This document shows, piece after piece, positions 32,814 through 61,260 of a stretch of DNA of 64,000 bases. Source of the stretch: Iphione sp. A-MEVVRFRX5 (Eukaryota); NCBI GenBank assembly GCA_976226885.1, contig OZ320321.1, positions 55,862,001 to 55,926,000 of the forward strand, given 5' to 3'. Position numbers and translations under genes: made by a program. Position 1 is the stretch's first letter, and the number at the start of each line of letters is the position of its first letter. The notes below the pieces were generated by a model. That model searched no databases. It was not told the DNA's origin and saw only the letters and a program-made list of their open reading frames with translations.

Positions 32814-34655
32814 ACTTAGGTGCCTGTGACAGGTCATCTGGTAGGTAGTCTATCTCAAGGTGGGGACAGGGTAGAGAATCTGCCCAACCACTTCGGACCT
32901 TCTCATCATTGGTTCCTCTTCTCCCGGGTCGTGTCCGGAAAGTGAACGGCACTGTCTATGATGAAACAACCGCTCAGACACTACTCTTAAAATTCGATTC
33001 ACCGCCAAAGGAAATTTGGTAGGAATACATATGTTATAAATATTCCGGATTGCTTCTATTCAGAATAAGCATAGATTATGCACGATTGGGACATTCATTT
33101 ATTGTGCTGCCAAAACTGACCAAGTATTACCTACTTTGTCAGGCGATAATAAAATGGATACAATATCTATAAAGTAAAGTTTACTCACCATAGAGACGAA
33201 CATATTACATAGGAAAATTTAAAGTGCTTCTATAGGATCTTCAGGGAGTAGGATAAGTAACCATTGGAATGGGTTCTATACAATTCATGTCAGAGGCAAC
33301 TCACACTTTCCCTATCGATTACCTCACGCCTTTAAACGCCTATAACTTCTGAAGTTCAAGGAAATCTTGTTGGGCCTTTTTCCATATAAACATTATTGGT
33401 TTAAAGCATCACACAATAGCAATGATTAGAACAGCGCTGTGCTGCTTTGAAGGCTGGCGTAATACAAATCAGCTCCAGAGCTGGATGGCAATGGCACTGA
33501 GTTGATTTTGGTGCGAGCTGGCAATGGTGAGGTTTGGTCATGGCGCGAATCATCGTACAGCATATTCTCGAATGAATGGGAAAAAAGACTAAACATAACC
33601 TGTCTCTGGGGAGTTGGTCCCTTCCCCAGATACCTTCCAGAGCGACCTCGCAATGCCTAAATAAGGCTACTTGACCAGGGACCCCTCCCTTACTTGGTCT
33701 ATTGATTGTTCTAATACATATGTCATCTACGCTGGAGATTAAGACTAATCCACAGCCCATGGGCAATGATCCTGGCCAGCTTGTCCCTGCAGTCGCTCTC
33801 CTCATCAGTCTGCCTTGCGTCAGCCTCGAGCTACATCTGTGCCAAAACACCAGCGACTTAATGCGCCCGGTCGATACCGTGGAATTACCCTAATAAGAAA
33901 AGCTTACAGTGAGGCTTCCTTTAATTACCTCCAATGCTGTCTGGGAAAATAAAGGCCCATAGAAATAGGGATTCTAGGCCAGCAGGGGTGATGCCAAGTC
34001 CGAAAGCCAACCCAGCGGAGACGGTCAATCCGCGGGACTGGCCCGGCAGGCGAGCTCCACATTTTCTTCAATGCCCGCACCACAGTCAGTGTTCAATTAA
34101 CCCACACACTACACCTTCTTTCTCTCATAACGACATTATAAAGCCAGGATCTGCGCCGCCATAGGAGGCCTTACGCCGAGTTTGCTGGGCGTGGCAATGA
34201 AGGCAAACTAAAACAATCAGCCACCAAAGCTTGCCCGGCCCGCCGCGGCTAATTCGAGGAATTCCTCAAAGAGCGCGTCGACGTCATTGCCCAAATCGGT
34301 TTGACATGGGCTGGATGTAAGAAAAGATGTGATCAAGGATGGATGGGAGGAAAGTAAAGTGAGTCCGCGTGCCGCCTCCCGGAACGTTATTAAGGAGACT
34401 GAAAGGGTCCTCGAATCCAGAACTAATGCCACACAAATGGGCAAGAGCTGCAGCATGATTCACTCGGTAAGATTATCAACAATCGGGTGGGTGAAATGGG
34501 TCTGAAGGAGGGATGTTCCCATTCTTCACCTGCACTGAAGCACCAGGTCTCCCTTCAATATCCCTCTGTGTGTGGCACTGTGGATATTAGATCAGTGAAG
34601 AAAAGAAGGTGGGAAGTTCACATCAAAGAAGGATTGGAAAAAAAGGCCAACTTAC

Positions 34656-34701
34656 TCAAGTCATGTCTCTCGCCATTAGGGCATCTCGTCTGCAAACTTA
34701 C
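34656..34701 (-). other. Candidate recursive-splicing ratchet point with 46-nt cryptic RS-exon (RP2)
   Basis: The minus strand reads ...gtattc attcccatgttttattcttctcattg CAG|GTAAGTTT (junction 34702/34701; 20 of 26 pyrimidines). The 46-nt segment ends ...ACTTGA|GTAAGT (donor hexamer 34655-34650). Confidence 0.7.
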
Positions 34702-36558
34702 CTGCAATGAGAAGAATAAAACATGGGAATGAATACGGTTATTTCCTGAAGTGTAATTGAGTAATGACAGGAACAAACACAGCTTCTTTTAACGCCTAAT
34801 GCATTGCTGTCAAGGAAAATAATGGAAGAGGCCGACGGAAAGAAATTTTAAATTTCCAAAATATCTACCGCTTTCTGTCTTTCTGAAGTGAGAATAGGAG
34901 CGAATTACTAGTCGGCGTCTAATTGTTAAAAATTCAATTAGCTCTTGGCCGTGGGTGAAAGCTGGGTTGTGATCCCATATTTTCGGATGTCATTACGCCT
35001 GCTCATTGGCTGCCCTTCGAAACGGGCTCATTAGCGGCACGAAAAGCCGCTTACAGAGAAGAGAGCGGAGTACTTCGCACGGCCTTGTCGCCGACACCTA
35101 GGTCGCGAATGACTAAATACTTTTTGGACAAGGTCACAGCAAGTAACAGAATTGAGTAGAGCGAGAGCTACGAGCACACTGTGTAATATTAGCACATCTG
35201 TATGACGACTGCATTTACATACGTATGTTCCTACATTGTAGAGACATAGAAGATTGCTAAGACGGCGAATAGTGTACTGTATTTATTCCTGAATATAAAA
35301 TCCCTATACAACAGCATGGTAAGATGATATAGAATATTATTTGATACAAATGATCCATAGTTATCAATCTCCTATAGGAATTCTATATGTTCTTAGTTAA
35401 TTATGAATATTTTCAGCCATAGGTATTGCTATCGAACCACCTATGAAATTACATGACAAATTAGCTGACCCGCGTAGTAATTAAAGACTTGAAAGGTTAC
35501 CACCTGCTCTGCGCGATGCGCATATATTCATTCATAATTACAGGCGTTATGACGAATTAAGTCAGGAATTTGCAAAATGTATTCCCGGATAATACATGCT
35601 GTAAGGCTTTGGACTGATCTTCTGTAAATGACGCCAACCCTGGTATATCTGAAGGCTTTAAGGCTGTGGTCCCATAAATCCTAAGTGGGAAATGCATCAT
35701 AATCCCTAGGTTAGGGCTTGGTCCGTCATACACAATCAATTCCCAGTCTGGCTTTAACACCGTTCATCCCCCCCCCCACCCTTCCCCCACTGGAAGGGGT
35801 GTCACGGTAAAAGATGGAGACTATCTTTCGTAGCGGATCCCACACGGGCTTCTCCTCGGAAAGCAGGGGAGAAGCCACCCGTCTGGGACTCGACAAGAAG
35901 AGGTCTTGTCAATCTCTTAAGGTAATTGCACATGTGTGAATCTGCGAGGGCTTTTCTGGCTTCACTGATGGGTGAGCAGGAGCTACGAGGCACACGAGTA
36001 GGCACGGAAGGTGGGATGAGCACAGGTCTACAGAGAAGCAGCCATTAGACAATAAGGGGACTTTCCTGGTGCGACGTCTAGAAGGACTAATTGGTATTAA
36101 GGCATGTCAATAGAAGACCAAATGAAGGCTGCATGAGAACGCTTCCCTCGCCAAATCGTGGATAAGGCGTTTCGCTGGGTTACAACGCGAAAACACTTGG
36201 CCAAATATCTGCTCTTGTCAGTGTGTTAATGTTCAAATTACGTTTTTAGAGGTAATTTAGATAGATGCTCACTTTAAAATGTAATTTCGTCAGGAGTACC
36301 CTATCTGGTGCATTACGTCCACAGCTATGCAATTTTCTAATCGTTATTAATAGCAGATAATATACTCAGGATTCAAACTTAACTTTCTTAAATGTTTAGT
36401 ATCTGGGTCAATCACCTCCGAGTAGATATGGCCCTTTTTTGAAGATTCATCACCAGAATTTTATCATTACCACTTCATAGCTCTTCATGGCTTCCTTCGC
36501 CGGCATAGTCATTTTTCAGTTAGCTTTTGCTGCTTGCTGCTTCCATCATGGCAACTCT

Positions 36559-56009: not shown

Positions 56010-58679
56010 ACTCCGTTGGGGGAGGTTGCGCCAACCTCTTCCTCTTTCTCCCCCTTTATTCCCTCATGTGTGCATGTCTATCGCCAACCCTGTAGTCAAA
56101 CCATGTCCGCAGAACACCGGTCCATCCAACCGCGCATTTGGCATGAGCCACCATCTCCCACCAGTGTGCCACGGAGGGACGGGGGGGGGGGGGGTTGGCC
56201 ATACGGCGGTCAGCAGTCGAACCAGACGTCCAGTTGGCTGGGTTCCCCCTAAGAGATCGACTCATACCAAATCATTAAGCATGGCCCTCAAACGGCGGAC
56301 GTCACCACGACCAATGCGGTAACCATGAGTACTATCGCCATCGTCGTTGCCTTTGAATACACCATTACTATAATGACAACCGGTAGAGGTACATGTTATG
56401 CACGTTACTGGATGAATGTCTCATGCAACAAATATTAATGACTACAAGAGCTCTCTGAATATTTTACATGATTTGAAGTAAATTGGCCTATTACCCACTA
56501 AAGGTCACCAGGTCGTCAAGCCATTACTGTCTACGATGTTTCCCGTTTCTCTAGGAAGACATATCCTTCTACAAGCAATATAATATCATGACGTTTTTGA
56601 CGTGTGCGATGGTTCTACCGTTTTTACACGAAAAAGACACTTTTATCATCATTGAGACTCAATTCCGTTCATGGTTAGGAGCTATTTTTAGAATGAAACC
56701 CCTATGTAAGGTACTTCATATGCGAGCCACGGAGCTTCCCCGAGTGTTTGGTTCTCGTATGGAGGGTGCTGGACATACCGTGTATATACGGAAAGGGGGA
56801 GGCCAGTGGATGTGTGGGACAGCAGCGAGAGGATGTAATGCATATCAAATAGTCCACAGCAAAAGTGCCTACCATCATGCGAGCATAAAGCTACGCAGCT
56901 GAGGCGACGCTTCAAACGATAGAACACCTCCCTAGGGGTATCAGCAATCAAAAAGAGGATTTCTCCCCCACTCCGCGCCTGTAGGTGGATTGATCAATTT
57001 GCGTACGTTACAGTCCGTCATTTTGCCGCCTCGATTTTATCGAGGCAAACTGAGCATTTGAAATCTGAATCGCGGTTCATTTGTCGAAGTCGCCTCACGG
57101 ATGTGTCGTAGGGAGCCGGGAGAACTGATACGCCTCGTTCTATAGACAACAAATGGTGGGGGGGGGGGGGCTCCCTAACTGCAGCATACCTCATGTTTCT
57201 ATTTAAAATGGATAGTCGTGCCACCGCCCGACGGAGGCAGATCTATTAGTGGAAGCTACAGAAATGTAATCAGCATCACATTGCTGACCGGCCTGGGTGT
57301 CTCGCAGGCTCTTGCTGGCCCGCTCAGGCTTTAAATCCGCGTTAAGGCGATTGGCTGTTCACGTAATGTCAGCCAGAGAAATGACTAACGAGCACTGGAA
57401 CGGTCGGATAAACAAGGACACTTTTGTACGTAAGACAAAGCCAATATACCGAAGGCCAATAATCGCTAAAAACACAGCGGAGAAATTAAAGACATCATCC
57501 GCAGCTTTCGCTCTCTTCAAAGAGTGAGAAATAAGCGGTTACTTTCCTGCTGCTGCTTTCCAATGCCTTCGCATGGAGCTGTAGAGATGTCAGTCGATTG
57601 AACTATTGTTGATGTGCGTGTAATGATAATGCGATCAGTCTACGAGGAATGGCGACACTTTAGGTGTGAGAAAAGAAACCTAAAGCGATGCCAAACGTCT
57701 CCCAATCGCCTCCACTAAGTGGCTGAAATTGCTTCGCACAAATCAGACGGCGGAGGAGGTTCGGTGGAGAGTGGTGATGGATCTCCTCCTTTCACACCGA
57801 CGCCATTTAACTCGATAATCATTCACTGAGATTGATGGTCGTCGTATCGAATTATATCACAATACGTCTGCTAGCATTTTTTCGCCACTCGCGGTTACAT
57901 CCTAGTTAAATCTATTGTTAAACCATGTACATAAATAACGCTAATACGAGAGAACGCGATACAGCCCCACCGTGGCAAAGAAAGAATCATAATTTCGAGT
58001 AATACAAATGATCGCGAAAATGGAGGAATAGTACATTGTAGGGCCGTAACCTATACTCGAATCAGTGCGACTTGAAAATAAACGCAAATTAGGTTCGAGC
58101 AATTAGCTCGACCTTTAGACTGTCACTTGTCCTTCAGCGAGCTGTCATGCGCAGTGGATCGATAGCCCAGCCACTCTGCTGCATCGTACATATATAATCG
58201 AAGACGAAGTATACACAAGAGTCATACAAGTATTTACTCAGTCCCACACAGGAAACAAAAGATTTGTACGTATTTGCATGATGGTTTACGAGTGAGGTTG
58301 AACATGCTATTCTTATGATATTTTTACCTGTATTTCTCCCATTGCCTCTACTGCAACTAACACAGCACTTTGAGTCACTCAGTATTATTTACGTTATTAC
58401 AGGAACTCATTTTTGGGTGGGTTACTTATCTATTTGGGAAAAGCTACATACTGAGACGACCATACTGAGAAACATAAAAATCCAGTCAGATACTACACAT
58501 GTGCATTTTCACCGAAGGAAAAACTCCTAACATAACACTTATCGTTGGCAAAGGAGATTAAAGTACGGAATACCCGGTTAGTCCTTTTTTTCTCTGTTTG
58601 AGTGCAATATTCAAAGACGGCGTGAAGATAATTTACAGACTTGTGTAGGGGGGGACCTAGGTGACTGATCTTACCGTGT

Positions 58680-61260
58680 TTATTCGCGTAATCCATGCCT
58701 CCTGCGCCGCCCATGCTGTACGCTGTCAACCACAGCGGCATGAGGACAAACGCGTGCAGGCCATGGTATGTCATGGCTCCAAGCTGCATGGCTGGCCGAA
58801 CCTCTGGGACGAAGGAACAACTCGCTCTCTTGTCGCCGTCTCTGACGTCGTCGTCGTCGTCGTCGTCGTCGCTGTCGCCGCCGCCGCCGCCGCCCTCGCT
58901 GTTGACGCTGACGGTCGCTTCTCAGTCCACCAGGCGGGGCATTCTCCTCTCCGCCAAGGGTAGGCTACCCGCCGAGAGAAGCGGAGGGTCATCTAAGCTA
59001 CAGTTGTCATGTCATTTAAGACATCGACTCCAGTTTCACGTCCTCTATTGCCTTTCTATTCAGCAGTAGCTTGACAGACATCTACACTTGGCGTTTCGAT
59101 GTAGACATCTCCATCTAAATCCCCAAACAGCTCCGACAACTCTGCAACGCGCCCGTGCACCTTCTCTCTTCTCGCCACTGGTGCCTACTGTGGAAAAATG
59201 GTTTTTCTTGGCAGGATTCACCTCCGCGGGGGTCTCTCCCTACCACAGGGGTAGTGCAAATAACACTCAGAGATGCAACCGGCTCTCTTACTGCCGCTGC
59301 TGCTTTTACTGACTGACGATGTAGATAATTCCTGCACCGAAAGCTCTCATCAGAGGGAACGAGTACAATGAGATGGAGGAGGAGGAGTGGGCGGCCGACA
59401 GGTGAGGAAAATCTCGATGGCCACCTACAAAGTAATGATAATGGTGATAAGCACTTACGAGAGTCTCAGAGAAGCCTTAGTCCTGAGATACCTTATCACC
59501 GCCACTGCCGTTACCACTGTCGTTCCAGTGAGTCGAGTCCACCTCTTGCCTGCTGCCACGGCTACTCCTGAGCAGCTACCTCTGACAGGCGGCCGTGGAC
59601 ATTAATGATTCTCGGGAGAGTGAGGAGCTCTCCAGGGTCGGAGGGGTGATGTGGTCGGGCGTCGGGAGGCACTGCCGCTGCTGTCGCCGCCGCCGCCGCC
59701 ACCGCTGCCGCCACTGTCTGTGTCTCCCGCCTCCGCTAGCACCAGCACCACCGACGCCGTCACCGCCACTGCCACCACCGCTGAGGCTGGGAAGCCACCC
59801 GCCGCCAGCGCCAACGACAATGACGCCGACGAGAAGAGCGGACACTTGCCTCTTCAGTTCGCCTCTTCCGGATCGGGCCTCAGCCTGATACAGAGAGTGG
59901 CCAACGCCAAGTTCCTGCCCATTGGTGTGTACATTGGTTGGTCCTTGGCACAAACTGGGACAGGCGCCCAGGCTACTCGGTTAGCACATCTGGTTCAGTA
60001 GAGAACAAAACCTCGGGAGAGGAGGAGCCCGTCGACTTTTCAAGCTGACAAAACGTCTGAGTAGTCGCGTCCTCCCATCTAAGCTGCTACTGCGCCAGTG
60101 TCTCTGCTTGTCTCCTCCACTCCCTTTCAGGCGCACTCTGTCTCACATCGAACAGCCGGAGGAGGAGGAGGAGGAGCAGCCCTCGTCCCTGATGCTGCAC
60201 CTCTCTCCCCAATGTATCTGCTGCTGGCGCCGCTGTAGTCGCTGCTGCCGCTTGCTGCCGCTAAAGGCGCGGACACTCGATGTCTCAGAAAGTCCACCGG
60301 TCCGGCAGCTAACCTTGCAATTGTCGGGCTAATTTGCTGTCGATCAGAATCAAGTTAGTGATCTGGCCTTGTCGTGGGCTGACCGGGCGGAGGAGGCGGA
60401 GGTGGAGCTGTAGGAGGAGGTGGATGTTTCTTGAAGTAGTGGGTGGAGTTGGCTGTGTAGGAGTAGAGGAGGGAGGAGACTTAATAGGGAGGAGGCCTGT
60501 GGGTGGCTGAGATGGTGATGGTGGTGGTGGTGGGGGATCTAGCACCGACTGACGTTTTCAGTGATAAGATCCGAGAGGTGGTTTTGGGCACGAGCACGTC
60601 GCAGTTCTTTGGCCGGTCAAACTCGATCGTCTTCTGCAGAACCGAATCTGGATGTGTGTCCTGTTGGCCTTGAAGTCTAGTTGAAATGTCCGCTCGTTTA
60701 ACTTGGCTGCTCGGCAATGGCCAGGGCCCATCCCTCGTCGTCGCACAGCATTCGTCCCCGTCGAGCTAGTCTAGTAGCACTGGCCACCGAAGAACTAGTA
60801 GTAACGAACTTGGCCGTTTAGCGGCGGTAGTCGTGCTTGCCATGCACCACTCCCATTTACTGACTGAGTGCTACGGTCGATGAGCGCCGGCTGCACCACG
60901 TCTCTCTGACCGGAGCCACTGACTGCGGCGTTTGCCTCATGGACGCCTGCTGGTCTTGGGACACATTGCGGCACTCATAGACATAACTATACTGGCAGCA
61001 CACACCTCTCCAGCGGCTTGATGTGCTATTTCGTCCACAGAACAGGCAGTGCCTGCCATCAGAGGTACAACGAGGGCTGGGAGTTCGCAAAAAAAAGGTG
61101 GCAGGAGGAGGAGAAGGAGGAGGAGGAGGTAGGGGGCAGCAATACAGCAGTTGTGGCGGGAGGTCTAGTTAAAATCTACCACAAGCGGGCGCCTGTAGCA
61201 AACATTTATGACCTGGGTATCAGCAGTGCGAGTCCGTGCACGTAGAGCAGCTAGAAATAG
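58680..61260. promoter_or_regulatory. ~2.6-kb GC-rich island saturated with trinucleotide repeats (candidate CpG island / UTR / low-complexity exon cluster)
   Basis: Contains (CGT)n, (GCC)n, (GGA)n, (GCT)n and (GGT)n runs. All six frames are broken into low-complexity ORFs of about 125 aa or less. Confidence 0.35.
58846..58894 (+). repeat. Compound trinucleotide repeat (CGT)8...(GCC)6
   Basis: cgtcgtcgtcgtcgtcgtcgtcgtcgctgtcgccgccgccgccgccgccc. Confidence 0.9.

Follow-up and report, generated by a model that had tools for sequence, protein, structure and literature searches.

A putative recursive splice site with a cryptic 46-nucleotide exon in Iphione sp. and genome-wide enrichment of its module

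A stretch of 64,000 nucleotides (nt) from the genome of Iphione sp. A-MEVVRFRX5 (assembly GCA_976226885.1, contig OZ320321.1, positions 55,862,001 to 55,926,000), here called the window, carries on its minus strand a splice acceptor fused to a splice donor at 34702/34701, with a second donor 46 nt further on. We consider, with a probability of roughly 0.7, that this 34701 site is a recursive splice site (a ratchet point followed by a cryptic recursive splicing exon, or RS-exon) in a very long minus-strand intron, the likeliest host being intron 1 of a Cys-loop channel gene. RNA-level proof of recursive splicing exists for Drosophila and for vertebrates. We add a whole-genome test of the composite module, in which the fused acceptor and donor are followed by a second donor. 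Coordinates are positions within the window unless they are prefixed with a chromosome label (C1, C2, C19 and so on), and a slash within a motif marks the splice junction.

Anatomy and local rarity of the site

Direct reading of the minus strand confirms to the base what the original prediction had observed. A branch-point-like ATTCAT (34729 to 34734), to which this role is assigned from its match to yUnAy, has its A at 34730, 29 nt upstream of the junction. It is followed by a pyrimidine tract (34705 to 34729) in which 20 of 25 nt are pyrimidines, with 15 of 20 in the stretch directly preceding CAG; the earlier figure of 20 out of 26 holds as well, since the 26 nt after ATTCAT contain 20 or 21 pyrimidines, varying with the start of the count. 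Next comes the putative ratchet-point core CAG/GTAAGT (CAGGTAAGT, 34696 to 34704), with 34702 as the last base of the acceptor AG and 34701 as the first base of the regenerated donor. The second perfect GTAAGT (34650 to 34655, the putative RS-exon donor) begins exactly 46 nt past the first G of the 34701 donor, in the context TGA/GTAAGTTG. Both donors had been described as identical. This is true for the hexamer GTAAGT, but the flanking context differs, position -1 of the RS-exon donor being A and not G.

The predicted cryptic RS-exon (34656 to 34701) has a length that falls in the modal class of this genome, 26 to 56 nt. As had been proposed it shifts the frame, and in phase 1 it reads x-K-F-A-D-E-M-P-stop, that is, it meets a TAA after 8 codons. 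Phase 1 is the phase demanded by the acceptor of the downstream coding exon (exon 2 of the channel gene described below); the stop matters only if the upstream exon is coding as well. In sequence, then, the site shows juxtaposed 3' and 5' splice-site consensus, a short cryptic exon with a competing downstream donor, and an exon that is out of frame with a premature stop, which are among the features by which recursive splice sites and RS-exons are recognized. The surrounding 401 bp occur only once in the 1.18-Gb genome and do not form a tandem repeat, and no family was matched in an Rfam search of the whole window.

The core by itself is weak evidence. CAGGTAAGT occurs twice in the window against 0.43 expected, and two or more copies are seen in 7 of 100 shuffles; nor is GTAAGT in surplus (19 against 27 expected). 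We therefore give the composite motif for a larger region, consisting of the window and 200 kb flanks (264 kb in total, both strands). Here YAG/GTRAGT is matched nine times, with about 2.9 matches expected per strand. Two of these matches are genuine donors of Cys-loop exons, and the three on the plus strand are preceded by merely 4 to 8 pyrimidines out of 20. At least 15 of 20 upstream pyrimidines, a condition that about 3% of the YAGG sites in the region satisfy, is found only for the 34701 site and for a sister module, RP1. Both are on the minus strand and each has a downstream GTAAGT, at 46 and 74 nt respectively. By chance the combination of tract and YAG/GTRAGT is expected about 0.1 times per strand per 264 kb, or about 0.05 times per 64-kb window, so the composite motif is locally rare.

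RP1 (2711 to 2830) lies 31.9 kb downstream of the 34701 site on the same strand. It shares the ATTCAT element at a similar distance (about 30 nt upstream in both), has 17 pyrimidines out of 20, and carries CAG/GTGAGT at 2793/2792, followed by a predicted 74-nt RS-exon that also shifts the frame and contains a stop, and by a donor GAA/GTAAGT at 2718. It can also be read differently. An ATG-initiated open reading frame (ORF), MSIMKRTICSQHSFCSLFVLFT (2792 to 2859, minus), ends exactly at CAG/GTGAGT in phase 1, and an in-phase junction with exon 2 of the channel gene would give a 26-residue signal peptide, a length as found in the orthologs. The sequence upstream of this ORF is AT-rich, contains several ATGs and is not promoter-like. 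RP1 could thus serve as a ratchet point, as a first coding exon in a proximal position, or in both roles.

The ORF at RP1 raises the question of whether the 34701 site, too, might be no more than a donor. The pyrimidine-rich stretch would in that case be part of an unannotated exon, first or internal, that ends in CAG/GTAAGT, with no acceptor involved. The core does equal the plain donor consensus, and at RP1 the signal-peptide-like ORF ends at the donor in the right phase. At the 34701 site, however, the sole upstream ATG (34724) opens 7 codons in phase 2, which is unfit for exon 2 and has no signal-peptide character. The branch-point-like element and the second donor at 46 nt would be left unexplained, as would the roughly tenfold excess of second donors after pyrimidine tracts that is reported below. 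We consider this explanation very improbable.

Two weaker fused sites were seen on the same strand. One lies between RP1 and the 34701 site, at 15642 (TAAG/GTAAGA, with a donor-like GTRAG 35 nt on). The other is found at C19:56005925, 80 kb past the end of the window (TTTTCAG/GTGAGT, without a second strong donor).

Genome-wide occurrence of the module

Patterns were counted over the whole assembly, independently of gene annotation, with the same pattern reversed as a control and a purine tract as a second control. The bare motif Y8-N-YAG/GTRAGT occurs 426 times against 328 for its reversed control. Most bare sites are therefore chance matches, and the surplus of about 100 is similar in size to the number of complete modules: with a second GTRAGT 20 to 50 nt on, the count is 99 against 4 in the control, about 25 times above the chance expectation. 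For a second GTRAGT at 51 to 81 nt, the class that includes RP1, the counts are 24 and 10. Replacing the pyrimidines by purines (R8-N-YAG/GTRAGT) yields 435 matches against 501 reversed, and only 10 against 12 when the second GTRAGT at 20 to 50 nt is added. Hence a second donor is about ten times commoner after pyrimidine than after purine tracts (99/426 against 10/435, Fisher p = 2e-22), the reversed control having 4/328. The 34701 site itself fails the strict Y8 pattern on account of a single purine in the tract. It is one of the 23 matches, against 3 in the reversed control, of the class Y5-R-Y2-N-YAG/GTRAGT with a second GTRAGT 20 to 50 nt on.

The placement of the sites agrees with these counts. 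In the first 100 strict sites of the list, neighbours 2 to 100 kb apart form 19 pairs on the same strand and none on opposite strands. Random placement would give 1.8 pairs in each orientation, and 19 was reached in 0 of 5000 simulations; the purine-tract control has 5 same-strand and 2 opposite-strand pairs. Chains of sites within giant introns should produce just such a pattern. With RP1 at 31.9 kb on its own strand, the 34701 site shows both the one-strand chaining and the enrichment that a recursive splice site should have. Overall, we regard the counts and the placement as strong evidence that the module of acceptor/donor, 26 to 56-nt exon and donor is under selection in this genome and chained on one strand, which matches the prediction from recursive splicing of giant introns.

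The same numbers bear on the possibility that the 34701 site is a chance motif in non-functional intronic or intergenic DNA, unused by the spliceosome. Chance would account for the marginal enrichment of CAGGTAAGT alone in the window, for most of the bare Y8-N-YAG/GTRAGT sites (426 against 328) and for the 3 modules of the site's class in the reversed control. It does not account for two same-strand sites that are both followed by a GTAAGT, where about 0.05 sites with such a tract are expected per window, nor for the enrichment of the class (23 against 3) and of the strict class (99 against 4), nor for the same-strand clustering that holds genome-wide for such sites. A chance origin is for these reasons improbable.

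Chains of four to six distinct sites were observed at C1:129248029-129548885 (plus), C1:132867922-132983829 (plus), C2:19098131-19171139 (minus) and C4:92405799-92831761 (plus). Each runs along one strand with a spacing of tens of kb, and most sites have a second donor 26 to 56 nt on. The two chains on C1 comprise six plus-strand sites (129.25-129.55 Mb) and four (132.87-132.98 Mb); their sequences differ, so that they are not repeat copies. These four regions are strong candidates for recursively spliced giant introns. One module sequence was found in three identical copies, at C11:581576-581625, C12:784965-785014 and C13:101795595-101795644; as the copies are on different chromosomes, a dispersed repeat contributes a small share of the genome-wide count.

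Likely host gene and flanking genes

Just before the window, on the minus strand, lies a Cys-loop channel gene. Its exon 2 (C19:55841538-55841345) encodes ...TIAMSDEKRLIKHLL..., has a phase-1 acceptor (tttcag/AG) and is located 55 kb downstream of the 34701 site. The locus as a whole (C19:55821283-55841538, minus, 20 to 41 kb before the window) contains one exon 2 and two complete sets of downstream exons (55836747-55830710 and 55824670-55821283), which represent either two alternative 3' modules sharing exons 1 and 2, or a second gene with an undetected 5' end.

In the orthologs of this gene, exon 1 is a short signal-peptide exon. It follows that exon 1 here must sit upstream of exon 2, towards or into the window. 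We scanned for it using an ATG, a hydrophobic core and a phase-1 donor as criteria. The candidate first coding exon (58675 to 58789, minus) is a predicted ATG-initiated, signal-peptide-like ORF, MQLGAMTYHGLHAFVLMPLWLTAYS..., whose donor ACG/GTAAGA is in phase 1 and thereby compatible with the acceptor of exon 2. No other part of the window is as GC-rich as the one in which it is situated, and (GGC)n and (GAC)n repeats lie upstream of it; CpG density across the window did not single out a promoter. With this candidate the predicted intron 1 measures 79,136 nt, and the 34701 site and RP1 divide it into 23,973, 31,909 and 23,254 nt. The likeliest host of the site is accordingly this putative first intron of about 79 kb in an acetylcholine-gated Cys-loop channel gene, its upstream end being set by the predicted first exon.

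On the other side, 17 kb past the end of the window and 46 kb upstream of the 34701 site, a complete RWD domain (Pfam E = 8e-17) is encoded in one ATG-initiated exon (C19:55942925-55943281, minus). Both flanking genes are therefore on the strand of the site. A word search with the RWD exon found no relatives, Atlas led to generic RWD clusters only, and the rest of the RWD gene was not found.

The best named protein matches of the neighbouring channel gene are from annelids (Owenia, Dimorphilus, Paralvinella), a nemertean, a brachiopod and molluscs; with a best identity of 80 to 91%, the species itself is not represented among the annotated proteins. The observed/expected ratio of CpG is 0.80, unlike that of vertebrates. 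On this basis the animal is treated as a lophotrochozoan and probably an annelid. Further along, at C19:56015550-56017243 (minus), two overlapping long ORFs of 401 and 177 amino acids look like a mobile-element protein.

Intron 1 was compared with that of other species. In the Mytilus edulis ortholog it is the longest intron (19.6 kb), and it follows a 19-codon signal-peptide exon. The Owenia locus has a gene range of 48.4 kb, and the Littorina gene model is without exon 1. The closest relative with a long contig, from an ENA assembly, shares 89% protein and 75% nucleotide identity over the exons and has shorter introns; its 36 kb upstream of exon 2 and the 100 kb upstream here have no alignable sequence.

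Proposed splicing pathway

From this anatomy we infer that the 34701 site is used in vivo, which exon lies upstream of it, and in what order the steps would follow. The 46 nt from 34701 to 34656 would be recognized by exon definition from the signals on either side, namely the branch point, the pyrimidine tract and CAG before it and the GTAAGT at 34655 after it. The upstream exon would then be spliced to 34701, by which about 24 kb would be removed, and the new junction would recreate a strong donor, exon/GTAAGTTT. Position -1 of this donor would be G provided that G is the last base of the upstream exon, which is the case for the candidate exon 1. The recreated donor would outcompete the RS-exon donor TGA/GTAAGT, which is probably the weaker of the two because it has A at -1 instead of G, and would splice on to RP1 (31.9 kb on) or to exon 2. 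The 46-nt exon would thus be discarded and be absent from the mRNA; its inclusion would shift the frame and meet the TAA. Inclusion of this exon, or of the 74-nt exon of RP1, would be poisonous since both shift the frame and carry a stop, in agreement with the published property of cryptic RS-exons (PMC8605326).

An alternative that starts from the same two donors is that the 46 nt form an ordinary alternative exon, a cassette, poison or 5' untranslated region exon that enters some of the mRNA. In that case the 5' GTAAGT of the exon would be incidental or re-spliced only on occasion, with no obligatory stepwise removal of the intron. The acceptor and the downstream donor do delimit a plausible small exon, and expressed RS-exons are known in flies and vertebrates (PMC8605326; PMC6224609). 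Still, the frame is shifted, and a stop stands in the phase set by exon 2. Moreover, a GTAAGT exactly at the acceptor is what distinguishes the enriched class from its controls, and a consensus donor at the start of the exon is unexplained for ordinary small exons. We find this explanation unlikely, though less so than a chance motif or the donor of an unannotated exon.

Several points weigh against recursive splicing at the 34701 site in the proposed host. As to the site, the pyrimidine tract is interrupted and the strictest pattern is failed; the control count of its class is small (3), so that the portion of the class above chance, about 87%, is a rough estimate. As to the host, the upstream exon is solely predicted, and the scan that yielded it was unspecific, with 5 candidates at strict and 25 at relaxed thresholds. 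The RWD exon may belong to a different host gene, or the interval could be partly intergenic; when 20 long minus-strand ORFs between the flanking genes were compared with Pfam, no family was matched. As to other species, no such fused site was found in the 19.6-kb intron 1 of Mytilus. The 36 kb upstream of exon 2 in the relative contain no strong fused site, just two weak TAG/GTAAGG sites, but that species is too distant for the comparison to be informative. Finally, the support is at the level of sequence.

With these points taken into account, the interpretation in the original prediction is partly supported. The configuration that it described corresponds to the published architecture of fly ratchet points and belongs to a composite that is enriched genome-wide, while use of the site follows by inference.

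Comparison with known systems

In fly ratchet points an acceptor is fused to a donor, and behind them lies a short cryptic exon that is out of frame and brings a competing donor of its own; these cryptic RS-exons are about 50 nt long, generally out of frame, and skipped (PMC8605326). Ubx, kuz, Bx and hundreds more are known in Drosophila, and conservation of the core is a hallmark of the fly sites (PMC8605326, PMC6110457, bioRxiv 10.1101/006163). The 34701 site is similar in having a fused (Y)n-NCAG/GTAAGT in a very long (here predicted) intron, and an out-of-frame cryptic exon that is short (46 nt, compared with about 50 nt in flies) and terminates in a donor of its own. As in Drosophila, there is a chain of several sites along one strand with tens of kb between them, and the host gene is neuronal (here predicted). 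There are also differences: typical fly sites have a more perfect pyrimidine tract, and the animal here is a lophotrochozoan, not an insect, in which the system is known from sequence alone. A search of the literature available here that combined recursive splicing with annelids or molluscs returned incidental mentions only.

On balance we lean towards the view that fly-type recursive splicing by means of short cryptic RS-exons operates genome-wide in a lophotrochozoan, with at least about 100 strict modules chained in giant introns. All three bilaterian superclades would then have it, and it would probably be ancestral; the 34701 site would be one working example, in intron 1 of the acetylcholine-gated channel gene. 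If the site and its approximately 100 siblings in the genome are used, the stepwise removal of giant introns by way of decoy exons would be an old and general bilaterian solution and not one peculiar to flies. Annotators of such genomes would need to regard short poison exons as obligatory intermediates. The channel gene and other long neuronal genes would rely on a 9-nt element, mutation of which should cause loss of function, as in flies.

Sequence statistics alone have favoured the fused motif outside Drosophila before: ratchet-point sites are computationally enriched in large introns of mosquito, bee, beetle and sea urchin (PMC2773006). That work considered the sense strand of long introns, included no lophotrochozoan and did not consider a downstream RS-exon donor. 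The present test, by comparison, is free of annotation and uses reversed-pattern and purine-tract controls together with strand clustering.

Vertebrates provide the second comparison. There, the RS-exon is defined first, and the recreated 5' donor then competes with the RS-exon donor (Sibley et al. 2015 via PMC8605326; PMC6224609; PMC6110456). The 34701 module resembles vertebrate RS-exons in that inclusion would bring a premature stop and in that the hosts are long neuronal genes (here predicted). Few sites are known in vertebrates, and in their large introns the motif is little enriched over the complementary strand (ratio 1.5 or less, PMC2773006). In this respect Iphione differs, as the composite is about 25-fold enriched genome-wide, and is closer to flies.

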